DNA from: Lepidodermella squamata | Lineage: Eukaryota > Animalia > Gastrotricha | Direction: 5' to 3' | NCBI GenBank assembly: GCA_047495785.1 | Contig: JBLDXI010000017.1 | Coordinates: 248,001 to 312,000 of the forward strand | DNA length: 64,000 nucleotides | Part shown: positions 1 through 60,800 of the stretch, one piece after another | How positions within the stretch are numbered: the stretch's first letter is position 1 | Layout: each line of letters opens with the position of its first letter | Position numbers and translations under genes: made by a program | The notes under the pieces: model-generated | Seen by the model: the letters and a program-made list of their open reading frames with translations, nothing else | Databases searched by the model: none | Told to the model about the DNA's origin: nothing

Positions 1-1891
1 GTATTGTAGTTTCGGCCCCGCAAGGAGCCCTCCCGGTCGCGGTGCAAACCTTACCACCTCTTGCCAAATTAATCAACAATCCAAAGTTTGTTGACATGGC
101 CTCGCAAGTTGGGACCTTCGAGGTTGCTGTGAACACTGACATCGAGCAGAGAAATGTTGGAATTTCTACTAGAGATGACGTAGTTTTCATCTATCAGCCC
201 GGTGAAGAACCAGTCAATGACGTTGACCCACCGAAAGCTCCTCGTCGCGAAAAGAAACAGGAGAAGCGGAAACCAAGAAAGCGGTCACCGACACCATCTA
301 CCGAGAGTGAGACAAGTGATTCTGAATCATCTCGTTCAAGTTCAGAGGATCGTCATAAGCATAGGAGGACGCATAAACATTCCCATCATAAACTTTCCAA
401 GCATCATCATCAGCATCATCATCATCACCGAAAATCGAAAGATCACCACACTAAAAAGCATAGAGATCATCAAAGAAGATCATCCTCAGAAAGCTCAAGC
501 TCGACATCAAGTCAATCTGCCTCGTCGTCGAGATCTTCATCTCGATCAAGCTCTAATGACAGGCGAAAACGCAAACATCGATCGAAAGACAAGAAGCATT
601 CAAAGAAGGTCGAAAAATATAAACTTAAAGGCAAAGATTTGAAGGAAAAGCGTGATTTGGAGGCGTCATCTGAGTCATTAGTAGCAAGTCCCAACAAATC
701 CCGATCAACAAAGAGACCGAGTGAATCGGATCAAGCATCTCCAAAGCCACCTGCTGTTATCGTGAACCCTGAGGTACTTAAACAAAAGATTTTAGGTGCT
801 CTAAATGCGAATCAAGCGGAATCGAATCGGACAGCCGAGTCGAGTAGTAGCCATACCGCCAAGGAACCTTTATCCCGAGTTCCTTCTAACCAAACTGCGC
901 CGAGATTGCCATCTGCAGTACCAAAAGCACCCCTCTCCAGGAACCCTTCGCTTAACAACGTGCCTGACAAACATTCTTCAGAACACAAGGCTCTTTCAAG
1001 AAAAGACTCTCAATCACCCCCGCCATCGATTTCAAGATCAAATTCAAGCTTGCAACCCAGCAGTCGTAAAGGCAGATTACAATCTCAGCTATCAAATGTT
1101 GGTTCTAAAGGCAATAATGGTGGTCATCTGAAAGTATCTCAGCAAAGGAGTCACGCTGCTTTAGGAAGAACGAATTCTAATTCTTCAACAGCAGGAAAGT
1201 CTCAGTCTAGGCAATCAAGCCCAGACTCAGTCCAAAGCAAACCTTCACCTCGAGGTCATGTCCCTATTCAAAGGCAGCAATCTATCAAAAGGATGAACAG
1301 CGGCGTAGTTGGCAGAGATCGAAAACTTTCGATTGTACCCGAAAGAGATACCCCTCATTTATACGGTTCTGACGAAGTTGGCGATAATACGCCTTATGTC
1401 GGTGGATCTGAGCCGTTAGTAGAGTGCAACGTATGTCACAGGAGATTCGCGGCTAATCGGCTGGCTATCCACGAGAAGACGCACGCCACTAAACCTAGGA
1501 AAGTCTTCGACATGCGTCAGAGGCGTTTGTCCACGTTCCAGGGCAACGATCTAATGATTGTCCAAGAAAGTGTTAAAAATACCGCGAAGAAGAGCAAGAG
1601 TCAAAAGGAAAACGCTAAATGGCGCGAGAAACACGAGGCGTTCATTGAGGTATGACATTTGAACCTAACCCTGATTAATTATTTACTAAGTCTGTGCTTT
1701 AGCAAATCCGTTATGCTAAAAAGGTGACAGAACTCGAAAAGACAGGCGGTGATATACGGACACTCGGACCTGCACCTAAGACTTTCACAGGCGATCTGGA
1801 GCCATGTCCGAAATGCGGTCGCAAGTTTAACAGTGAAGCTATAAAGCGACATGTTCCGATTTGTAAGGCAGAGCCTGCAAAGCGAAAGTGA
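1..1891 (+). CDS. ZC2HC1-like C2HC zinc-finger protein (paralog A), 5' truncated by the window; exons <1-1649, 1703-1891
   Basis: Frame open from the window edge; Ser/Arg/His-rich low-complexity body; CNVCHRRFAANRLAIHE finger, KWREKHEAFIE|QIRYAK across a GT-AG intron (1650-1702), second finger CPKCGRKFNSEAIKRHVPIC; stop 1889-1891. Confidence 0.8.
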
Positions 1892-5383: not shown

Positions 5384-8300
5384 ATGGCACTTGTCTCGCC
5401 ACTTAAGCCTGATGTGTCGCTGAGTGAGGAGGATCCTGTCTACTGGCGTCTTCACAGATTTCTACATTGGGAAGATGCGAGGCGGTCCATTCCTCGCAGA
5501 CGACCCCGCAAAGGTGACATCAGCGAAAGAAAGGTCAACCTAAGCAATAGAAACAGCCGCATCCCTGGAGTAACACAAAGAGCCAGTTTAGATGACCGGG
5601 TCGAGTACCCACCTCCAGAGGAACGACCTAATAGGGTTCGGGGCTACTACTACGCCCAACAATTCAACTTGGTCAGTTCCTATACCAAATACGCATTCTG
5701 TATCGAACATTTTCATTTTCAGCCATCCTGGATGGATGAGGACCTTGATAGAAGACCATCTCCGCCAAAAGGTGCGACTCATCCTTGGGACCTTGATCCA
5801 CGACCAGGTGATGTGAGCCCTGAAGTCGTAACTCAAAGTCAAGACAGGCCAGTAACCCCAGATTTGCCTCCAGCCCAACCTCCTCCTCCTCCTCCTATTA
5901 TTCAAATGATGCAAAATGAAGAAGAAAATGTGAAAAGTGAGCCGGCTCCTCAACAGAAAACAGTCACATTGTCAGTACCAGATGAAAGCCGCCCTTCTCG
6001 AGAATTGATTTCAAGTGAAATGAGAAACCGATCGAAATCGATAGCAGAGAAAAAGGGAGGACGATTAGACACTAGGAGGCCATCCAGTGCTCTGCATGCG
6101 TCTGATCCCAATATTAAGGAGGTCTTGGAGATGCTTAAGAAGCGTTATGCTGGATCGCCGGCGGAGAAAACTCGTGAGCCGAAGAAATCTGAGAGTAAGT
6201 CGGCGAAATCTGACGGCCGGCAAACTGCCAAGGCATCAGCTCTTTCACAACTCAATGAGAAAATCAAACAAAATGACGCTAGCTTGATTCAGGCTGATGC
6301 CCCGACCTCGGCGAAATCTACTGCTCGAAGCAAAAAAGAGAAACGTAAAGAATCCCCCAAACCAGAGCCGGAAAAACCGAAATTAACCCATCGGCAAAGA
6401 GTTATAGCAGAATTTAAAGCTAAGAAGAAGGGCAAGGAGAAGAAGAAGTACGTTCCTATGTCGAAGAGATACATCAAACCACCTGCTGTCAAAGAAAGCT
6501 GGGACAATGTAACCTCTGCGATTGGTGAAGAGTTCTCTGAAAATGTTAACTGGAAGCCCAAGTCAAGATCTACATCAAGAAGGAGAGAGTTTTCGAATGA
6601 CAGTGATACCGATGAAGGAACAGTCACTTCAAAGGTCTACTACAATGCTTCTCCAACAAATCGCTCCATAAGCAAAGCGTTAGCTAAACTTACCCTTTCT
6701 CGTTTAATCTACTACAGAAATATTTGTAGATCTCTGAAGAGCTCAATTTTGAAACCAGTTACAGTTCCTAAGCTGCAGTCAAAAGGCAAAGCAAGAAGTC
6801 GACTTGCTCTGAGTCAGCCAAATCTCGCTTCTCCGCAGCAAAACTTGAACCATCTAGCTGTTTTGCCTCCAATTGGGAAAGTTACACGAAGCATAAGCAC
6901 TGCCCCTTTGGAGGTCTCAGAAAAGAGAACGAACAACGTCGCATCGCAAGCTTCTCAATGGGAAACTGCAGTCAACACTGATAAAGAAACGCGGAGTGTT
7001 GCAGTTTCTACAAGAGAAGATGTTATCTACATCTATGAAACAGTCCCTGTTGCCAAAAAGAGTAGCAAAAAAGAAAAGAGATTTAGCTCAAGCTCATCTA
7101 GATCATCCAGCTCGTCTTCATACTCAAGTAGAAGAAGATCGAAAAGGAGGCATAGAAGGAGATCCAGGTCCTACTCATTTTCATCATCAAGTTCTTCTAG
7201 ATCTAGCACCTCTTTACAAGCTAGTCCGAAGAAGCATCGAAAATCCAAGTCCAGACGGCCGAAACATGGCCGGCATCGACACAGATCGAACGACGACAAG
7301 CCAGAGACAGCAAAGGCAGTTGAGGAGAATGAGAAACCTGAGAAGTTGGTTGCTTTCACCGTTCGAACGTGGAGTGGCAGAACTCGAAGAATGTCCTACA
7401 CTTCAGAAGATCTTGAAAACAACTCGGTCGAGAGTCTACGGAAGAAAATCATGAATGAGGTCGGTATCCCGAAAGAAACGCTTCAAATTACGACAAAAAC
7501 AAAAGGGGGCGATCAAAGAAGAGCGTCAAAGGCTAACTTGGCTGAAACTGGTTCTATTGAAGGCCTGAGAAGATTGAGAAGGTCTAACTCCCTTCACCCT
7601 GCTGCCTTCTCAGATCAAAGCTCGGGAAATTCCACCCCTCGAAAATCGATAATAAAAACTCAACCAACACCAGGGCCGAATCTCGATAGGAGAATGTCAT
7701 TACCTCTATCTAGAACTTCGTCCCTACCAGCCAGTACCCACCTAGCTGTTCCTACTTTGCTGAAAGATGTTCTGAAGTTTAACAGCAAGATTCCGAACTC
7801 TCCCAAAGTTAAAGTGAGCGAACAGCGCCGGTCTTCCCAGCCGAAAATTGCGGAAGAAAGTCGAGTGGGATCAGAAGAGGAAAGCGGAGCTGAATCACCT
7901 AGAATGTCTACTGCAGCCTCATCCAAACGCGGAGTTCCCCTTCCGAAAATTGTGGTCGAGCCTCCGCCTATCAATCTGCCGAAGCTTGATCTGGAGGAGT
8001 GTCGATACTGCAACAGGAAATTCTTACTAGACCGGCTTGAAATTCACGAGGCGACGTGTTTCAAGATGAAAAGGAATCAAGCTAATCGGAAGATTTTTGA
8101 CAGTAAAAAGGCGAGACTCGCTGCAGTGTTAGCTAATGCATCGGATCGAATGATTCTAGAGGGGCGATCAACTCCTACGCCTCCAAAGAAGCCATCATTA
8201 TGGCGGGAAAAGCACAAAGCTTTCATAGAGGTATAAAACCATTATTTCTCAAGATCAAAGTAAAAAATTTCTGTTTCCAGCAAATCCGTTATGCTAGGAA

Positions 8301-8469
8301 AGTCAGTGAAATTGAGAAAACTGGGGGCGATATCAGGTCGATTGGACCTGCCCCGACGAGTTTCACCGCCGATCTCTCCCAATGTCCGAAATGCGGTCGG
8401 AAATTCAACTCCGAGGCAATAAAGCGCCATGTACCGATATGCAAGGCAGATCCAGTTAACAAACATTGA
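5384..8469 (+). CDS. ZC2HC1-like C2HC zinc-finger protein (paralog B, ~1010 aa); exons 5384-8230, 8281-8469
   Basis: CRYCNRKFLLDRLEIHEATC and CPKCGRKFNSEAIKRHVPIC fingers; WREKHKAFIE|QIRYARK with intron at the same place as paralog A. Confidence 0.8.
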
Positions 8470-8503
8470 GATTTTATTTTTCAGTCCTAAAAATGGGGAG
8501 AAT

Positions 8504-10026
8504 TCACGATAATAAACAACACGCCGAGCTATTCTTATTCCGTTCAGATGAAGCTTCTGAGCGGATTGAAAGCGGGGGGATAACAATTGGTTCTTTCCCA
8601 GTTGGGCAGCCTAGAACCATGTCGAGTTTCGATCGAATGTCTTGAAAGACTTGATAGAAATTTCGCTTGCTGTTCGTTCGATAGTCGATCCAGGATTTAT
8701 GCTCGAGAAACGACGGCAGAGTTCCTCGACGAGGCTTTTTGTTGCTGTTTGGGTCAACTTCTGGGTCGAAGTCCATATTAACCAGTACCATAGATTTTTG
8801 GTGCCTTTCAGCAAAGAGGCATTCTTTCAAGCATTGAGCATTCGAGCTGTAGCTTTCCGAGAATAAAAGGACAAAAGCTTCGGCTGAGATAATTTCCTAC
8901 CAAGGAAAAGGGGTTTGAAATAAAACGCCAAAGAAATTTCACCACTCACTTGACTAATTTCATCTGGAGCTGTTGATGACTTGCCCCGATCCATGAAGAC
9001 ATTGTAGCCGTTATCCATCAACTTTTTCCGAATTTTGACAGCATCCTCCGCCCTGTGCTGTTTGCTGTAACTGACGAAAATCGGCCTTCCTCTAGCTGTC
9101 CTAGGGGTACTCTTCACGCTAGTATTTTTCTCTGCGATTCGTCTGTCTTTTTTGAGGTCTGGACTGGCATTCGGAGATTCCTTTACTGGTGCACCAGCCG
9201 GAGTTTCTGGGCTACTCTCCTCCTCGTCGGAACCGGTTCCTGACTCTTCTGAGCTATTGCCATCTGATTTTCCCCTGTTATTTCGCTTACTACTATCCCC
9301 GAGTAGCTTCAACTGACCATTCACGTATTTCACAACAGCCGATACGTACATCCCAACTTCACAGCCAATGTTCATAGCTACTAAACTGCCATCGAACGGG
9401 TCTAACATCGGAGCACCAATCAAGTCGATCGCCTGACTCGAATTATGGCAAAAAGTACTATTCAGAGACAAACTTTCCCCAATAAGGCCAGAAGCAAATT
9501 CAATCCCACCCTCCAGCGAAAATTTCGGCATTGAAAATTCACGACTTGTTGCGAGGTTTTGACTAGAAATCGAGATGGGCATGAATTCGAACAAGTGTTT
9601 AGACTCGATTGTTTCGAACATCTCGTCGCTTAGTTCGAGCAGGGTGAATCCATAATCTTCATCACCCAATGTCCCACTAAACCACCTTATGGTGTCCTTA
9701 TGGATAGTTACATCCAGAACTTGGGTCCGATCTAAGCCGCTTTTGATTCTTAAAGGGAATGGCTTGGACCGCTTCAGGACGTCCTTTGGTATTACAGTAT
9801 CTGAGGTGAGCAGTGCGAACATCGGTAGCCGAGATGGTAGGAAAACGATGCAAAAACATCCACTCCCAAAAGTTCGCGGAATCGCCTGAAACTCATCGCC
9901 TTCCAGTTCGATTTTGGCCGTGGCATGCGTTGATCTTGTCAAGCTTGGCGTGCTGCCAACAGGTGACGCCTGCTCGATGACTATCGTCGGCAGTCTGGCG
10001 AGTTGTTGAGGTACTTTTTCACGCAT
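8504..10026 (-). CDS. Trypsin-like pseudoprotease + TIR (TIR_2-like) domain protein with C-terminal CaaX; exons 10026-8950, 8896-8504
   Basis: 53-nt GT-AG intron 8949-8897 joins IFVSYSKQHR...YNVFMD to AFVLLFSESYSSNAQCLKE; N-half has GSGCF, LLTSDTVI, DYGFTLLEL and GAPMLD..GSLVAM motifs; ends CCLLS*. Confidence 0.75.
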
Positions 10027-10207
10027 GGTCGAATTACGCTTCTCAACTATGCGATGTGTAATAATATCTGTAGGCTGAGAACTGGAAGATGATTTTTTAT
10101 TGCGGCCGATCGATACAGCATTTTCTCATCGATGCGCCTAATCAACTTCCGGGCTGTTGTGCACATGTGTGTGTGTATGTGTGGATTGATAGCGATCGCC
10201 TCGTCGT

Positions 10208-10220
10208 GTTGCTAGGCAAC
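10208..10220. promoter_or_regulatory. RFX X-box-like palindrome
   Basis: GTTGCTAGGCAAC about 180 bp upstream of the ATG of the TIR gene. Confidence 0.55.
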
Positions 10221-10959
10221 GCGTGTGCGACGCTCTTTAGGTTCAGCTATAAATAGAGCAGATTAATTGTGCGAAAAATTGGGCTTTTCTATTCTTTATT
10301 CTTCGACAGAAAAATTGAGCGACACATCGGCCTTGATCTTCAAAATTAGCTGAGACCATACCGATATTCTGAGAAAAATGGTATTCATGAAAAAACGAAT
10401 TTCCAACAATATTGAAGGAAATAATTAAAGAGCTGAATGCTGAATGCTGAAAGGTTAATATAGAAAATGCTGAAAAGGAAATGAAATTCGGTGATAAAAA
10501 TTAGAAAAATGGAAAAATATAAAATGAATAATAAAAAATTCAAAATTTCAATTTTTCAATTTTTCAAATTCAAATTTGAACAATTTCTCCAAAATCTTCA
10601 AAAATCTCCAGCAAGATTTCAACAGTTCTTCCTTAATTCTTCCTTAATTTCTTGTTTTCAAATAGCATTTTTTTGTACTTTTATTTTTTATCGCACTTTT
10701 CGTCCTATTTTTGATACCATGTGTCCTAAGTGATGTTTTGCGCTCGAAATATGCTGCCACTTCGGAGTTGCGAAAAATAGCCAGTCCCAGAAGTTTTATG
10801 TTGTTATTCGAGGAGCAGCAGGTTTTGAAAATGTATCTTCGGTACTCACTTCGGCCTATATAACCAGCTATGATCATGGCTAAAGAACAGTTACAAATTT
10901 CATCAGCTTTTCTTTCAGCTAATTCTTCAAGTTTACTAACGACCGATTCCGGCTGGAAA

Positions 10960-31851: not shown

Positions 31852-33966
31852 ATGAGCAGCTTAATCCAAGTTGTGGCCTCGGTCCTGTGGAGCGTTGGTG
31901 GGACTATCGCCGTCAAGAAGTTTAGCTTGGAGATGCTAGCAATGATACCGTTCGATGATCTAACTTGCCTGGAGTCGATCACTCGAGTGGCAAATAAAAT
32001 AAACACTCAAACAGATGTCCTGCATGATTATCACATAACCCTTCGTATTCGAGATGAAGGTGCCAACAGCTATTATGGACCATCGAATTTGATTTCGTTC
32101 GTCAATGCATGTAAAAGCAACAGATCAGAGCCCAACTTCCCTAGTCCGGTGACTTTTGGTCCGCAATCGAATTGTCAAGCGATAATTCCCATTTTGAAGT
32201 CAGAAGGACTTACTAGTTACTCATCGGGGTGCGAAAATGTCCCATTTAATAAAATTGGTTCTCCAGTCCAAAGGATTATTTCTGCTGAGCAGATTTCGAT
32301 GTCAAGCTTGATTTTCGCGAAATACTTTGGGCGCTGGAATGAAATCGCCATTGTCTCCAGCTCCAATGATCGGAATAACTTCCATCAAGGCAAATTTATC
32401 TATGAAAAAGCTATGGAGAAAGGCTTCGGAGTTCCATTTTACTCCTCCAATGCGAATCTGGATTCGAATCAAATGCTGGATCTTCAAAACAGCGGAGCTC
32501 GTTTTGTCATATTAAGCTATGGAATCACAGTTGAAGAAACTATTCGATTCCTATGTTCGGCGTCCGATTTTGGTATCAAATCTCCTCGTTTCGTTTTTGG
32601 TATCTACATGGCACCGTTCGACCCTTACGATCTATCAATTCCGGTGCCGAAGGGTTGTAGCAGGAATGTCCTGAAAGAGCAAATCAACGTGTCGTACTGG
32701 TTCGATACTGGCTATCCAATCAATCTTGGCAATCAAAGATGTGAAGAGTCTTTCTTATCTGCTGTCAATGCTCTCGACTCAAGCGAATCTATTCTCTGGA
32801 AGATGTTTGGCTTATCCTTGAAGGATTGGAAGTTGTATCCAGAGATCATATCCCAAGTTGTGAGAAACGCGAGTTCATCCCGAAGCCGGAGAGAATACGT
32901 TTTCATCATGCAAAGGATAAACGGTACTGCAAAAGCTGTTTACAAGGTGAAAGTGCCATTTCAAGATATTGAAAATCCGGATAACTACAAACTCTTCGCG
33001 ATTTCAAAACCAATCTGGTTCACAAAATCTGGCTCACCCCCAAAAGATCGCAAAGCTGTATCTCACCGAGAAGACCGATTTGCTCTCGCAATCTATGTCG
33101 TAATTCTTTGCTTAGCTGGTTGCGTCGCGATGTGGCTGATAGTCCTAACCCCCTTAACCTTGTCAAAAGAGGGCAAAAACAGTTTTGAGAATTTTGCAAC
33201 TATCATCAGCTGTTCAATCGCTGCAGTTGCTAGCATTGTCCTAGCAACGGAGGCTGCCTATCCTAATTTGACCAGTCTATGTAAAATCCGCCCTGTTCTA
33301 GCTACAATCGCCGTCACATCAATGAATTTATCAACTGTCATTCGATGCGCTATTCCGAATAGAATGGCAAGGACTTTGGCAAAGTTTAAAGACTTGTTTC
33401 GATGGAGCTCGACGAAAAGGCGGCAGTTGATGCGACATTACAGACGGAAAGAGCTGATTTTGATGGGATTTTATGCCGGGTTAGTCCTATTAGTAGTTAC
33501 GGCTTGTCTAATAACCTGGTTGTTAACTCATCCATTCCGTGTGTCTAGTGTTGTATCTCCAATAACGTTTGATGAGGAAGAAGGGGTTTTCTTTGATACG
33601 AATCAGCTATTTTGCTCAAGTGAAAAGGAGTCCAGCTGGCTGATGGCTTTGGTTGTGCTGAACACACTTTTATTAGTCGCAGCTGGTGTAAATTCTTATA
33701 AGACTGTTGTTATCCCGGTTTCTTCGGATTTTGTCTTCGAAATTCGCCTCGCAAGGCTTTCCTATATCAGCTCGGCTGCAATTTGCGCTGCAGCTCTCTT
33801 GTTTTCACTTATACTTCAATTTTTCAGCAACCCTTCTCACGGCCAAATTGCGATAATCTGCATTGGACTAGTTGTTTTGTCTCTTGTAAACAGTTTGATC
33901 GTTTTAACGTCACTTTGGAAGCCCAAAGTCGAAAAAGAAAGTGCAAGACCGTCATTATCAGCGTGA
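31852..33966 (+). CDS. Intronless divergent class C (GABA-B-like) GPCR
   Basis: 704-aa ORF: flytrap-like ectodomain (VLHDYHITL, FGRWNEIAIV, GARFVIL), W...PPKDR linker, no Cys-rich domain, seven TMs with LCKIR and FEIRLA motifs. Confidence 0.75.
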   Translation: MSSLIQVVASVLWSVGGTIAVKKFSLEMLAMIPFDDLTCLESITRVANKINTQTDVLHDYHITLRIRDEGANSYYGPSNLISFVNACKSNRSEPNFPSPVTFGPQSNCQAIIPILKSEGLTSYSSGCENVPFNKIGSPVQRIISAEQISMSSLIFAKYFGRWNEIAIVSSSNDRNNFHQGKFIYEKAMEKGFGVPFYSSNANLDSNQMLDLQNSGARFVILSYGITVEETIRFLCSASDFGIKSPRFVFGIYMAPFDPYDLSIPVPKGCSRNVLKEQINVSYWFDTGYPINLGNQRCEESFLSAVNALDSSESILWKMFGLSLKDWKLYPEIISQVVRNASSSRSRREYVFIMQRINGTAKAVYKVKVPFQDIENPDNYKLFAISKPIWFTKSGSPPKDRKAVSHREDRFALAIYVVILCLAGCVAMWLIVLTPLTLSKEGKNSFENFATIISCSIAAVASIVLATEAAYPNLTSLCKIRPVLATIAVTSMNLSTVIRCAIPNRMARTLAKFKDLFRWSSTKRRQLMRHYRRKELILMGFYAGLVLLVVTACLITWLLTHPFRVSSVVSPITFDEEEGVFFDTNQLFCSSEKESSWLMALVVLNTLLLVAAGVNSYKTVVIPVSSDFVFEIRLARLSYISSAAICAAALLFSLILQFFSNPSHGQIAIICIGLVVLSLVNSLIVLTSLWKPKVEKESARPSLSA

Positions 33967-45609: not shown

Positions 45610-47771
45610 ATGGGGAACAATGCCAGTCAGCGGCAACGCAAGATCTCCGCAGCTCCGCAGAGCAGCAGTTCCTCAAAAACCAACCTAGTACCATCTGCCT
45701 CATTCGAAAGCGTCGCCATTCCATCCGGACATCGGCCGCCCTTTGTAAAACAGTCCAGCAACATCAGTGGAAGTAGTGATGAGCAGAATAAGAAGCCGTC
45801 ACCAAAGCTGAATCAAAAGAAGGCTTTCAATCAAAATGGCAGTACAAACGGCACGCCTGATGAAGCTTCGATAACTAAGCAGCCGTTCGCGTTTCGAGCT
45901 GTGGCGATGAACCCCGGTGATCACGCTATGGTTGTCAATATGTTAGAATTACGGAGATTACTAACTCGGCCTGATGTTCGTGATAAACCTGTTGTGGTGC
46001 TTTCTATAGCCGGACTAGTCCGGCGAGGCAAGTCGTTTCTGTTAAATTTCCTGGTAAGATACCTCGAACTGCAGTCAAGTCCGAAATTCCTGATGAGGAA
46101 CAGCAATAAGTCCTGGCTTAACACCGAACCCCTTCAAAGCACATCCAGTCTCAATCCTATCAAGCATTTAGGCCAGCAACAGCAGAACTTGCAATGGCTC
46201 AGGGACACCTCGTCAGATGCTAATAACGCCCTGGCAACAAATAGCATCTACATGTGGAGCAAGCCGTACTTTCGCCAAATCCCAGGCGTTGGTGAAGTTG
46301 TGATTCTGTTAATTGATGCTCAGACTTCTTCGTTCGAGTGTGCGCAAACTGCGAAGGACTGTGCAACTATTGTAGCTATGTCGACCATGTTAAGCTCGGT
46401 GCAAATTTTCAACGTTCAGAGTTCCATTGAAGAGAACGATTTGCAGCATCTGCAAATGTTCCTTGAATATGGCAGAAATGTGCTACAAGAAAACCGCTAT
46501 TCCAAGCCTTTCCAGGTAAGCTCATCCTAACATTGAATGTCATTTGGTCACCTGTTTTTTAATAGAATCTTGTCTTTCTCGTTCGTGACTGGTCTCGCCC
46601 TTATGAGTTCTCTTACGGTTTCGAAGGAGGGGAGCGCTATCTTTCCTATCTTCGCAATGGCGGAAGCTCACAGAATATTATAAGCGGTGGGCCAGATCCT
46701 TTCAGCTTGCCAAAGAATCTTGAGAATGGATCGATAAATGGTATTCTAACACGTCGCCACGTTGACTTGGAACGCATCTGGCAGCGTATTGACGATTGTT
46801 TCGAAACAGTTTCTTGTTTCCTCATGCCTCACCCTGGCACGGCTGTTGCGACAAGCGAGAAGTATACTGGACCAATGAAGCATATCGATCATTCTTTCCT
46901 AGATGGAATGCGGCAATTTGTTCCGAAAATTTTGAATGACGACAGTTTAGCGCTGAAGACTATAAACTCAAACCCGGTTACTTGTGCGAATCTGTTCAAT
47001 TTTTTGAAAATTTACGCTGAAACGTTGCAATCGAATGGTTTGCCGGCAATTCCTGATTCCCTAGTCACATCTGCGGCTCATTTGCATTACTGGTCGATTT
47101 TTGATGCTGCTAAAACGAGTTACGAGGAGGAGATGGAGAAATTTGTTGATTCAGCTGGTGAAATTTCGATGGACCAATTGCGGAGCGAACACATCCGGTG
47201 CACTAACGAAGCTGCTAAATCTTTGACGAGGTGAGACATTTAGAAAGCCTATAAGAAATATGTTAAAGTTTACTCTCTGTGTAGTGATAAGTATTTGATT
47301 GATGATGAGGAGCTTCAAGAGCTTTACCGGAGGAGGCTGACTAAATTCACTCGAAAGCGTTTGGAGCACTACACAAAACTGGTAGAAACGAAGAATGAGA
47401 CGTTGAATAGGTAGTTCTTCCAAGTTATTTCCCCTGCCAGTGTATTAAGATGTTTCTTTATTTTTCAGCAGTGGCAGTCATCTTGTTGCATCAATCTTGG
47501 CTGAAATCGCTAATTACTTAAAATCGAGCTCGAACCAAATTAACGCATCCTTACCGTCTTTCGTACGCAATCGTCGTACATTGGCAAGATTGGCGAATTT
47601 CCTGACTTTCTGCGCCATGCTTTGCGTAGCTGTGGCGATAATTGCCATAATTGGTAATCACAAGATCATTTAAATAATTTGTGAATTTAACCACTGTATT
47701 CTTCAGGACTTCCTGTTCTGGTCAGCGTTTTACTCGGCGGGGCGCTATATTACTTCAGCAAACGATCGTGA
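45610..47771 (+). CDS. Atlastin-like (GB1/RHD3) GTPase; exons 45610-46515, 46566-47230, 47285-47410, 47469-47653, 47707-47771
   Basis: VVVLSIAGLVRRGKSFLLNF, STMLSSVQIFN, DLQHLQMFLEYGR, KPFQ|NLVFLVRDWSRPYEFSYG, CFLMPHPG; C-terminal TM hairpin. Confidence 0.88.
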
Positions 47772-51148: not shown

Positions 51149-55914
<4,766 letters not shown>

Positions 55915-57889: not shown

Positions 57890-60800
57890 ATGGAATCTTT
57901 GCTGAAGTGCGGCGAGATAAAGTCGCACGGTCAGCTGGTGAATTTGGTACATGATATGCAGTTGAATCTTGTCGTGAGTATATGGGACGAAAAGGATGTA
58001 ACTGAGCACCACAGTACAACTGTTCGTATTATCGATATTAATTCAGGTAATTATTTCAATCATAGCTATGTTGTTTTATTGCTATTTTTCTGCTTTTATA
58101 GGAAATTTGGTTTCGCAAGCTACGTTCAAAAATTCGAATCGAAAGAGCGTTTCTTGTGCTTATCATCCTTTCCTCGATAAACTGGTCCTCACGGACGGTA
58201 ATGCTATAAGTGTTCGACGCGACACTAACGGCCGTTTCCTACTGGCGAGCGTTTTCACATGCCCAGTAGCTTCGTCTTCGGACGAAATCGCACTGGAATT
58301 GCTGCTTCCTCACGCTCTTCAGCTGAAAGATGTGATTGATTTTGCGTCGACCGTCTCGCATCAAGGTGCTGCTGCTGCTCCTATGGCTTCCATTTCGGCA
58401 AACAGTAACGAGCCGGGCGCATTTTCTTCGCGAAAATTAAATTTTAACCTTATTGGTTCTCAACTGCAAGAAGTATTATCTCAAGCTACCCCGGAAACAA
58501 GGTAAATTCCATTTTCTTTAACAAAATTCTCGAATTAATTGCCGATTTTTAAACCAGTTCGGTTGTGTTAAAATTGCGTCAATCGACATTCTGTTCGTTA
58601 TTGTACTGGCTGATGAACATTTTGGGCGATTCTATGCACTGCGGAAATCATATGCGAAATCGCGTTCTATCAAATGCACCCACCCCACCACTACAAGCCG
58701 TGCCAATTGGCGACTCCGGTCTCGGAAAATCGTCCGTTGGTTCAAACAAAACCGGCTCAACATGCATGCAACAGCCACACAGCCTTCTTCCAGTTGTTTC
58801 ATCGCTGTACCTCCAAGCTATTATGCAGCTATCAGACCCGTATAACGAAATTCCAAAAGAGCACATGTTTGCGGAAATTTTTCGTTACGAGACGTTTTTG
58901 GAGTGGCCACATATTGACTACGAATGGGCTGGCCCGACTTCAATGGCCGTAGCCGGGTTTTACTACCAGCCAGCTTCCAGAGCGGAAGATCGAGCTGTTT
59001 GTTTTCAATGCGGGGTTTCGTTAGTTTCCTGGGAGCCGACTGACGAACCCTGGTCAGAGCACGAAAGACACGCGCCATCCTGTCCAATGGTCACGGGTGA
59101 TATAACATCGAATGTCCCACTTGCTGAGTCTGAATCATTCGAACCAGCTCAGCCGATCTACGTCTCGCCGCGTTTTTCGCCGATTGGCGACGAAAATAAT
59201 GCCGAGACTAATGACGGTGCTTTGAAAACCAGAATTCTAACGTCAAATAGCGATGGTTTGATAATAAGCGCGAACAATGCGGGAAATGTCATTTTGTGGG
59301 ACGCAACTCGCCGTTTGAGGCGATGCGCTTGTTTCTATTTGATTTCCGATTTCAAACAAAGCCAATCTTCGGCGTTGAATTACAAGGAAAAAGTCAATTT
59401 TCAGGCATTTTGCTTGCCTGAGGTCAGCCACAGCGATGCGGCTGAGGTAGACCCCGAAAATCGGCGGAAAAGCTCGTTGGGTAACAAGAAACAGGCGAAT
59501 AATGACGATGAGTATGTCAGAATCGTCGCGGCTGGTTCGTTTGGCGAGCAGTCGGAGCTATACGTGCTGGAATATATCCTTGAACCGCCCCTTTGGGCCG
59601 ATTCTAGGTTGGTTTTTTGCGCTTTAAATCGAATTGAGACTCGAATAAATCGAATAGACAATCATTTTACTAGATCCGACAAAGTTTTGGGCTTGTAATA
59701 TAAAAATAAAATTGGTGAAAATCAATCTCAAAAATAGCATTAAAGAAAAAAATTATCCATTTGGTATTCCAAGGCGTTATCCGGCCTGCATATGGTAATT
59801 CTGTTAATTTTTCTTCTACGAGAATGAAAACGATACCGGGAAATTTAGGATGCAGAAAATTACGACAAATTTTTCTGGTTTTTTCTGGTTTTGTTTGAGT
59901 TCCTGTTGCTCATCAAATCTTAAATTAAAATGTGAAAAAAATCAAAAATTGCGAAATACCAGGGAAATTTTGAGACCTTGAGCGCTATGCTACTGGATTT
60001 CAATCACAAAAAAGGAAAAACAACCAAAAAACTCATGAGTTCCAATGGAAGCAACTTGCATCCCAGAGATATAAGAGATATAAGTAAATGGAAATTTGAG
60101 GATATTTTGAAATGCAAGACTCTGATTTCTTAGAAAATTTGATAAATTCGCGTTTTCAATTTTTAACGGTCAAGGTTCCATATTCCAAGGACTAGAGGTT
60201 GACAAAAGATATAAGAGAAACGGAATTGACGGACCTAGTTCATTTTGTCATTTTCAAATTTAATTGGAATTGGTTTTGACTGGTCTAAATTATTCTTCAT
60301 TGAATCTCTCTTTTGTTCGTATTTTTGTTGATTTTTTGCTATTTCACCGTTTTTAATTTTTCTAGGTGCCAAACTGAAGGTGCAAGATCAGGAGCTCAAC
60401 CGCCCTTCACGTCTAGCTCTTCCGCCCCGATAAATGACCAGTACAACCTGATGCAATACGACATGTGGGACGACGACTCGCCGCCCTACGAAGAGGACCA
60501 AATCAGCCAAGACGATCAGGAACCGACGTTTCAAACGACCCAGGATAATAATAATAACGAAAAATCCAGCGACGCCAAACCGACCGAGTCGAAGGAACCG
60601 TTATCGTCCTCAACCTCGACTACAAATGAAATTATCGCGGCTACTGTTGAGCCAACGACGAAATCAAGTGGAAGTCAAGAGTTGGAAATTCCACCGCCTA
60701 GTAACGATATGGACGTCCCTATAGCAGAGCCGCAACCTCCCGGAGCGATGCGGCAGGTTTTCATAACAAAACCAGTGCCAACTGGCGGGACTGAACCGGT

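Follow-up and report, generated by a model that had tools for sequence, protein, structure and literature searches.

What switches animal TIR enzymes on, and where in the cell does this occur? Outside the Toll pathway, the TIR domains of animals, including those of rotifers, have been shown in a preprint to be enzymes (10.64898/2026.04.20.719644). The locus analysed here, from the gastrotrich Lepidodermella squamata, encodes 489 residues and is a compact test case for both questions: it joins a sensor-like domain under purifying selection, a TIR domain with a glutamate at the catalytic position and a putative lipid anchor from which the site of action can be predicted. The gene lies within a window of 64,000 nucleotides (the whole stretch of DNA analysed). 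An earlier note, made from the letters of this window, had read at this place a spliced protein of ~490 residues, in which a dead protease, a linker, a TIR domain and a CaaX tail would form an innate-immune or cell-death module.

The open reading frames and their translation yield a protein of 489 amino acids, encoded by 359 + 130 codons in two exons of the minus strand (Table 1), in agreement with the length proposed in that note. Transcription and splicing are documented by the cDNA run X1. The loose ends in this run bear the SMART cDNA oligo, and its coverage is confined to positions 8501-10041, i.e., to the gene only. Within the intron the depth is zero, and position 8896 is joined to position 8950 within one cDNA contig; a second loose end at 8896 runs on into 13 letters of 8950-8962. 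The junction contig and the absence of intronic depth confirm that the sequence between 8897 and 8949, previously suspected to be an intron, is indeed spliced out. The locus is an intact animal gene, which is transcribed and spliced. At its 5' end, trans-splicing near position 10046 is possible; its 3' end overlaps with a convergent neighbouring gene.

Table 1. Features of the L. squamata TIR gene. Positions are those of the window; aa, residues of the 489-aa protein.
Feature	Position	Strand	Description
Exon 1	10026-8950	minus	ATG at 10026, 359 codons; encodes the N-terminal domain, the linker and TIR residues 1-47
Intron	8949-8897	minus	53 nt, GTGAGT...TAG, phase 0; interrupts the TIR domain
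Exon 2	8896-8504	minus	130 codons + TGA (8506-8504); encodes the remaining TIR, the tail and the CaaX
Orphan N-terminal domain	9295-9921	minus	aa 36-244, strand-rich; possibly degenerate trypsin-like (PA-clan)
LLTSDTVI	9790-9813	minus	aa 72-79, 'His motif' of the earlier note; Thr77 at the His position; by eye
DEDYGFTLLEL	9631-9663	minus	aa 122-132, candidate 'Asp motif' (D-x-A-L-L-K-L type); by eye
IDLIGAPMLDPFDGSLVAMNIG	9364-9429	minus	aa 200-221, candidate 'GxSGxP ... G-x-v-v-G-i'; Ile202 at the position of the nucleophile Ser; by eye
Linker	9091-9294	minus	aa 245-312, Ser-rich; acidic first half, basic second half; probably disordered
TIR, part 1	8950-9090	minus	aa 313-359, IFVSYS ... NVFMD; Pfam TIR_2 and NCBIfam ThcB4 TIR
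TIR, part 2	8594-8896	minus	aa 360-460; Pfam TIR_2 and NCBIfam FxsC TIR-like
Glu384 codon GAA	8822-8824	minus	candidate catalytic glutamate, context FSESYSSNAQCLKE
CCLLS	8507-8521	minus	CaaX box Cys486-Leu-Leu-Ser489 and adjacent Cys485, then stop
AATAAA	8473-8478	minus	26 nt 3' of the stop codon; likely poly(A) signal

The comparison of the two haplotypes bears on whether this gene is maintained. The reading frame is intact in both, and indels between them are restricted to the intron and the 3' flank. The listed differences comprise 28 synonymous versus 8 non-synonymous changes; relative to a neutral synonymous share of 22%, this synonymous excess has a binomial p of 2.6e-12, and the omega value obtained from the same listed differences is about 0.08. 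When the N-terminal domain is taken alone, the listed haplotype differences are 11 synonymous versus 2 non-synonymous. The gene is under purifying selection. One could argue, from the fact that a homologue was found nowhere, that the locus holds no functional gene but a chance ORF, a pseudogene or an assembly artefact. However, this explanation is barely credible in view of (i) the spliced cDNA, whose coverage is confined to the gene, (ii) the strong synonymous excess and the frame kept in both haplotypes and (iii) the presence of a recognisable TIR domain.

The latter was identified with profiles. The TIR_2 scan (Pfam PF13676) was run per exon: profile positions 1-32 match residues 316-348 of exon 1 (20.1 bits, E 9e-4), and profile positions 49-115 match residues 3-77 of exon 2 (17.0 bits, E 8e-3). 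Either piece alone falls below the curated cut-off of 28 bits, but they follow one another collinearly over the verified splice and add up to 37 bits. In NCBIfam, the ThcB4 TIR profile matches the first part at 5e-4, and the FxsC TIR-like profile matches the second at 0.022. Pairwise searches were conducted with exon 2. In the plasmid collection, the best tblastn match is an annotated TIR protein, at the weak E value of 6; PDB sequences gave no match, and the word-index protein search returned no relative at E values up to 10. Taken at the level of profile matches, membership in the TIR family is confirmed.

Does this domain retain the residue on which TIR catalysis depends? In the translation, Glu384 is located within LLFSESYSSNAQCLKE, and its surroundings follow the plant/bacterial-type pattern S-x-x-Y-x5-C-x-x-E. 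The motif alignment showed that the Ser(+12)Glu spacing in FSESYSSNAQCLKE is identical to that in LLSNKYYESKSCQQE (LSNKYYESKSCQQE) of the Adineta steineri protein A0A814VN55, for which E440 is tabulated as catalytic, the domain as active and the product as cADPR (10.64898/2026.04.20.719644, Table S4). Glu-dependent cADPR synthesis is found in many non-TLR animal TIRs, rotifer ones included (10.64898/2026.04.20.719644). The assignment of a TIR domain with a glutamate at the catalytic position, as put forward in the earlier note, is thus borne out by the TIR_2 and NCBIfam matches and by a spacing equal to that of an active rotifer TIR. Judging from its sequence, the L. squamata TIR most likely processes NAD+ in a Glu384-dependent way.

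A different role for the same domain has to be considered: without catalysis of its own, the TIR could serve as a scaffold, and the protein, a sorting adaptor with a lipid anchor, would gather further TIR proteins (Toll-like receptors, MyD88-like adaptors) at a membrane. Vertebrate sorting adaptors combine membrane tethering with a single TIR domain; among the membrane TIR adaptors of vertebrates, TRAM is myristoylated and TIRAP binds PIP2, and some membrane-tethered TIR adaptors have no known enzymatic role. The high divergence of the L. squamata TIR, which has no relative in pairwise searches, would also fit an adaptor. We nevertheless consider this role unlikely, as the glutamate is retained within the S-x-x-Y-x5-C-x-x-E motif found in a rotifer TIR of demonstrated activity, and as the Glu-dependent synthesis of cADPR extends, as described above, to many animal TIRs outside the TLRs (10.64898/2026.04.20.719644). 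The Glu-dependent enzyme remains our preferred reading of the TIR domain. The adaptor and enzyme roles can coexist, and a retained Glu alone is no proof of enzymatic activity.

Of the regions that flank the TIR domain, the one downstream bears on the second question, i.e., the place of action. The linker upstream comprises 68 residues, among which S (13), E (8), K (7), R (6) and P (6); it is Ser-rich, as had been stated, but the description of it as acidic applies to its first half only, the charge of the whole being mixed. Downstream, the CC-CaaX tail noticed earlier is read directly at the extreme C-terminus. Given the composition of the protein, a strict CaaX ending is expected by chance at about 3e-4, and a CC-aaX ending at about 6e-6. 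A CaaX box with an upstream Cys constitutes a signal for farnesylation and palmitoylation, and a Ser at the X position indicates farnesyltransferase. By sequence-based criteria, the protein is cytosolic and lacks both a signal peptide and a membrane helix: the maximal hydropathy over 19 residues is 1.65 and is reached in a strand region containing Pro and Arg, so that a membrane helix is not expected. Most likely, Cys486 is farnesylated and Cys485 palmitoylated, and these lipids would tether the protein to a membrane from its cytosolic side.

We then come to the N-terminal domain, which had been described as a trypsin-like pseudoprotease. The motif strings quoted in support of this description are present. 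In addition to those collected in Table 1, the domain contains GSGCF (aa 54-58); the tabulated stretch of aa 200-221 comprises IDLIGAP (aa 200-206) and GSLVAMNIG (aa 213-221). In Trypsin_2/3C-type proteases, the elements GSG...T-x-x-(H)-V, D-x-x-x-L-L-x-L, G-x-(S)-G-x-P and G-x-L-V-x-M-x-x-G follow one another in this collinear order. In the by-eye alignment the catalytic triad is not kept: Thr77 replaces the His and Ile202 the nucleophile, Asp being present at 122/124. Because this motif alignment is unverified, the term 'inactive' holds only if the trypsin-like fold is correct.

Language-model features point to the same clan. With the whole domain, ESM-Atlas features gave a score of 0.97, and at least 54 of the 60 matches fell in PA-clan peptidase clusters (Trypsin_2/Trypsin/S39/C3/C4). 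When the first half was used as query, the named matches were all Trypsin/Trypsin_2 (0.94, 0.92), 49 of the 60 matches being in unnamed clusters; the second half, the stronger of the two for Trypsin_2, matched this family at ranks 1-2 with a score of 0.96. The numbers of shared features (165, 152 and 161) are lower than the 170 that true family members typically share. In the calibration, which does not extend to protein parts such as the queries used here, a score of at least 0.95 was reached by about 1 in 100 shuffled proteins, and all-ten clan agreement occurred in one-third of the shuffles. On these features and on the order of the motifs, the head is possibly a degenerate trypsin-type two-barrel fold.

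Sequence, profile and structure searches gave the pseudoprotease no support. An exhaustive phmmer search with exon 1 against 1.84 billion representative proteins identified no relative, and neither did word-index searches in which the query was exon 1 (at E values up to 1e-3) or the N-terminal domain (at E values up to 10). Back-translated patterns found nothing in the genomes of bacteria and archaea or in viral and metagenome contigs, tblastn within the window revealed no paralogue, and phmmer with the N-terminal domain found no match among PDB sequences. No peptidase family was found for the domain in Pfam (including Trypsin_2), NCBIfam, PADLOC or PHROGs at E values up to 10; Pfam likewise returned no peptidase for the domain and its halves. 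With a local HtrA profile, i.e., an HMM of 80 protease domains related to E. coli DegQ, the N-terminal domain scored -2.2 bits and did not exceed its 2000 shuffled versions; the P value from hhalign was 0.24. This negative result is weak because HtrA represents a single branch of the PA clan. Two runs of AlphaFold2 without an alignment ended at pLDDT values of 35.5 and 34.3, with no usable model, and for the first of these low-pLDDT models Foldseek returned nothing at a threshold of E 0.001.

A rival explanation keeps the same TIR-CaaX gene but takes its head to be specific to this lineage and to have a different or new fold, the motifs being coincidental. In its favour, the sequence and profile tests are all negative, the low-pLDDT structure runs gave nothing, ESM scores of at least 0.95 occur in about 1 in 100 shuffled proteins and the shared-feature counts are under 170. 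This explanation has to account for the agreement on one clan, by ESM features, of the whole domain and two non-overlapping halves, and for a motif order collinear with that of Trypsin_2/3C-type proteases, and we regard it as possible but doubtful. We continue with the degenerate trypsin-type fold as the tentative assignment.

How might these parts work together? The reading that we favour, and which we consider evenly poised between right and wrong, is that of a membrane-tethered, Glu-dependent NAD+-processing TIR protein with a trypsin-type N-terminal domain that regulates or senses. The head would have a degenerate two-barrel fold and, as the His and Ser of the triad are missing from it, we propose that it binds rather than cuts. 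It would control the self-association of the TIR domains, and the associated domains would cleave NAD+ via Glu384, giving a cADPR/ADPR signal or NAD+ depletion. The whole would be a sensor-effector of immune type on one chain.

The earlier note had gone further: it suggested that the dead protease is a decoy which, upon binding an inhibitor of a pathogen or another ligand, switches the TIR on. In a variant of this idea, the linker would act as a 'tripwire' for a protease of the pathogen, by which it is cut. The architecture is compatible with such a decoy, and genes with GBP and BIR domains are located in the same window. However, the listed haplotype differences reveal constraint and not positive selection, and the trypsin-like fold that the decoy presupposes is unproven; we hold this version to be quite improbable. 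The regulating or sensing head is the form of the proposal that we compare below with known systems.

The combination of an orphan head, a TIR domain and a CC-CaaX tail is undescribed. In the literature we found no paper that pairs a TIR domain with a pseudoprotease and none that describes a prenylated TIR protein, and the protein and contig searches were equally without any relative, consistent with the note's failure to recognise a described orthologue. Taken singly, the elements have counterparts. The predicted anchor at the C-terminus resembles that of RhoB and H-Ras (CC-CaaX or C-x-x-CaaX), with Cys-aliphatic-aliphatic-Ser preceded by an upstream Cys; in these proteins, however, the anchor is carried by a small GTPase and not by a TIR protein. 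SARM1 is composed of ARM and two SAM domains and is octameric. The L. squamata protein has no ARM or SAM match in Pfam and, by this measure, is not a SARM1 orthologue; the two also differ in their membrane-targeting device. They have in common an animal TIR with Glu-dependent NADase activity (catalytic residue E642 in SARM1; 10.64898/2026.04.20.719644, Table S4), restrained by an N-terminal regulatory domain, both the activity and the restraint being predicted for the L. squamata protein.

The enzymatic non-TLR TIRs of rotifers (TPR-TIR, A0A814VN55) share with it a cytosolic location and a layout in which the N-terminal module varies and the TIR behind it has the catalytic-position Glu in S-x-x-Y-x5-C-x-x-E. 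Rotifer TIRs make cADPR, and one depletes NAD+ (10.64898/2026.04.20.719644). However, the L. squamata TIR is paired with an orphan domain in place of TPR, ARM, Roc-COR or NB-ARC, and a CC-CaaX is added; there is no pairwise similarity. In the text analysed from the supplementary files of that study, its partner-domain table included, the word 'trypsin' does not occur (10.64898/2026.04.20.719644).

The bacterial NTP-dependent conflict systems provide the last comparison. The earlier note had cited fusions of trypsin and TIR in prokaryotic conflict systems; what the papers describe is not a direct fusion, but trypsin-like and TIR domains that are alternative modules at the same positions of these systems (Kaur et al. 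2020, PMC7159879; Kaur et al. 2021, PMC8195603). The trypsin domains in effector positions are mostly catalytically inactive and have been read as peptide binders (PMC7159879). An inactive trypsin-like module as binder or regulator, alongside a TIR effector that processes nucleotides, would be common to both, the L. squamata head being trypsin-like only if the fold is right. By contrast, the bacterial systems are multi-gene, prokaryotic and without a lipid anchor, and have no detectable sequence similarity to the gene, for which PADLOC and NCBIfam yielded no trypsin match. The fullest form of the proposal, in which an animal immune sensor would unite on one chain a dead trypsin-fold receptor, a farnesyl/palmitoyl anchor and a Glu-dependent TIR, as the eukaryotic counterpart of the bacterial inactive-trypsin and TIR modules, appears to us unlikely in its entirety. 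If the head is not a dead protease, it would be a new TIR partner domain; if it is, the theme of the pseudo-enzyme as receptor would extend from bacterial conflict systems to animals.

The TIR gene, a two-exon gene on the minus strand, is real and functional. Its product has 489 residues and, upon translation of the joined exons, ends in ...NSSACCLLS. No ATG is present upstream of the start codon as far as the nearest AG, and an in-frame stop lies 34 codons upstream of the start codon. An imperfect (GT)n tract, a repeat that was skipped in the read comparison, is located at 10158-10192, ~130-165 nt upstream of the start. Two public sequencing runs contain the locus. Run X1, the label of which is only a guess (RNA run), consists of cDNA, as its loose ends bear the SMART cDNA-synthesis oligo. 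Its contigs, which are blind to expression level and exact transcript ends, cover 8501-10041, with no coverage at 8300-8500 and at 10042-10300. In one of them 8896 is joined to 8950; the 53 letters skipped have CT..AC ends on the plus strand (i.e., GT..AG on the strand of the gene). Another record aligns up to 8896, after which its loose end reads TTGACTAATTTCA, matching 8950-8962, and the intron has zero depth. The junction contig and the zero depth therefore demonstrate that the 8897-8949 intron is removed, as predicted in the earlier note, and that the gene is transcribed. Run X1 also contains a 69-nt skip with GG..TT ends near 8574-8644 (one contig, depth 3) and several 'opposite strands' (strand-switch) joints at the locus. 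These were rejected as splicing because splice-site ends are absent on both strands; given the SMART oligos close by, they resemble artefacts of template switching or assembly.

Features of the TIR gene, its product and neighbouring genes (window positions, or residues where marked aa)
Feature	Position	Strand	Details or basis
TIR gene ORF start	ATG at 10026	-	ORF + translation
Exon 1	10026-8950	-	359 codons
Intron	8949-8897	-	53 nt, GTGAGT...TTGGTAG, phase 0
Exon 2	8896-8504	-	130 codons + TGA
Glu384 codon	8824-8822	-	motif alignment
GSGCF	aa 54-58		read directly
LLTSDTVI	aa 72-79		Thr at the His position
DEDYGFTLLEL	aa 122-132		read directly
IDLIGAP	aa 200-206		Ile at the Ser position
GSLVAMNIG	aa 213-221		read directly
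Convergent neighbour, zf-C2HC_2 gene	5384-8469	+	950-codon exon, intron ~51 nt at 8230-8280, last exon to TGA 8467-8469
GBP-type GTPase ORF	45610-46530	+	guanylate-binding-protein N-terminal GTPase domain, Pfam GBP 3e-28
BIR-domain ORF	58565-59698	+	BIR/IAP domain, 1.6e-21

Two versions of the locus (8403-10108) were found in run X2, a DNA run, one identical to the window and the other 4-9% different; both are also present in the cDNA run. This means that the genome is very heterozygous or that the locus exists as a pair of diverged copies. All five indels among the differences listed lie either within the intron or downstream of the stop codon. The listed coding-sequence substitutions (n=36; 50 further differences between the versions lie outside the listed set) comprise 28 synonymous and 8 non-synonymous changes; with a neutral synonymous share of 22% expected for this coding sequence, the binomial p is 2.6e-12 and omega is about 0.08 for these listed substitutions. 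Among the differences listed, the synonymous:non-synonymous counts are 11:2 in the N-terminal domain (aa 36-244) and 17:6 in the TIR region. Both halves of the product are under purifying selection.

The C-terminal half was assigned by profile searches. Positions 1-32 of the Pfam TIR_2 profile match exon 1 residues 316-348 (20.1 bits) and positions 49-115 match exon 2 residues 3-77 (17.0 bits); the two matches are collinear over the verified splice and their summed bits exceed the 28-bit cut-off. NCBIfam matched the first piece to the TIR of Thoeris type III ThcB4 (5e-4) and the second to TIR-like FxsC (0.022), and the best, non-significant, tblastn match in a plasmid collection is an annotated TIR protein. 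The motif spacing of LLFSESYSSNAQCLKE (aa 369-384) equals that of LLSNKYYESKSCQQE in Adineta steineri A0A814VN55, the last letter of which is listed as the catalytic residue E440 (Table S4, 10.64898/2026.04.20.719644). Because of this match, Glu384 is placed by motif alignment at the predicted catalytic position. The TIR domain of A0A814VN55 is marked as active and producing cADPR (Table S4, 10.64898/2026.04.20.719644). In the same preprint, TIRs from diverse animals including rotifers are reported to synthesize cADPR in a Glu-dependent manner, and a Rotaria sordida TIR to deplete NAD+ (10.64898/2026.04.20.719644).

The last five residues of the product, C485-C486-L-L-S489, form a CaaX box with Ser as X and a second Cys ahead; the chance of a strict CaaX ending is ~3e-4, given the composition of the product. 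Ser at the X position directs farnesylation, and a Cys adjoining the CaaX box is often palmitoylated, as in RhoB and H-Ras. Nothing resembling a signal peptide is found at the start of the product. The most hydrophobic 19-residue stretch (1.65) was rejected as a membrane helix because it holds Pro, Ser and Arg. The product should be cytosolic and lipid-anchored. Within the limits of sequence evidence, the TIR domain with Glu at the catalytic position and the terminal CCLLS described in the earlier note are confirmed.

The identity of the N-terminal domain, proposed in that note to be a pseudoprotease acting as a decoy sensor, is the crux of the case. Homology and structure tests were all empty or uninformative, the ESM Atlas feature search being the sole positive line for a trypsin-like fold. 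No relative was retrieved by word-index protein searches (E thresholds of 1e-3 and of 10) or by an exhaustive search of 1.84 billion representatives (E up to 1e-3); three contig collections and the PDB sequences gave no match, and no peptidase family emerged from Pfam, NCBIfam, PADLOC or PHROGs, even at E values as high as 10. A local profile from 80 DegQ/DegP-type protease domains scored -2.2 bits, inside the bulk of 2000 shuffled versions, and hhalign gave P = 0.24. Single-sequence AlphaFold2 models were strand-rich and were given no weight (mean pLDDT 35.5 for aa 1-255 and 34.3 for aa 36-244); Foldseek with the low-confidence aa 1-255 model found no match.

In the ESM Atlas, aa 1-260 scored 0.97 (a first match of at least 0.95 occurs for ~1/100 shuffled proteins, a calibration made on whole proteins), and at least 54 of the 60 matches belong to Trypsin_2, Trypsin, Peptidase_S39, C3 or C4 clusters. 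For aa 36-140, 49/60 matches are to unnamed clusters and the named clusters are all Trypsin or Trypsin_2 (0.94, 0.92, 0.88), and for aa 141-250 Trypsin_2 clusters occupy ranks 1 and 2 (0.96) and recur down the whole list. The five motif strings follow the order of Trypsin_2/3C-type enzymes. The strings named in the pseudoprotease proposal are present and the ESM features point to trypsin-like peptidases, but profile, sequence and structure searches did not bear the proposal out, and it is plausible but unproven. On balance, a trypsin-like fold is somewhat favoured for the N-terminal domain; if it holds, only one of the three catalytic residues would remain and the domain would be a pseudoprotease.

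The stops of the TIR gene and of its convergent zf-C2HC_2 neighbour (8467-8469) are 35 nt apart and the AATAAA of each lies in or beside the last codons of the other (8473-8516), so that the 3' ends of the two genes overlap. A second zf-C2HC_2 ORF (42-1655, plus strand, 537 aa) is probably a paralogue of the neighbour at 5384-8469. The GBP and BIR ORFs are immune or cell-death type genes that share the window with the TIR gene. Two long ORFs, at 31852-33966 (plus strand, 704 aa) and 52387-54342 (minus strand, 651 aa), match no Pfam family at E <=0.001.

In the most likely working model, the product would be a membrane-tethered TIR that processes NAD+, and the N-terminal domain would regulate this tethered enzyme. 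Literature searches returned no paper pairing 'TIR domain' with 'pseudoprotease' and no description of a prenylated TIR protein. Partner domains have been predicted for 16,011 eukaryotic TIR proteins, and the word 'trypsin' is absent from the text of the seven supplementary files of that preprint, one of which was covered in part (10.64898/2026.04.20.719644). Prokaryotic trypsin-TIR fusions, taken as established in the earlier note, are only loosely supported because the two papers on bacterial conflict systems (Kaur et al. 2020, PMC7159879; Kaur et al. 2021, PMC8195603) state no direct fusion. They describe, however, systems in which a trypsin-like module and a TIR module can take each other's place (PMC7159879, PMC8195603), and in which trypsin domains at the effector position are nearly all inactive and are probably peptide binders (PMC7159879).
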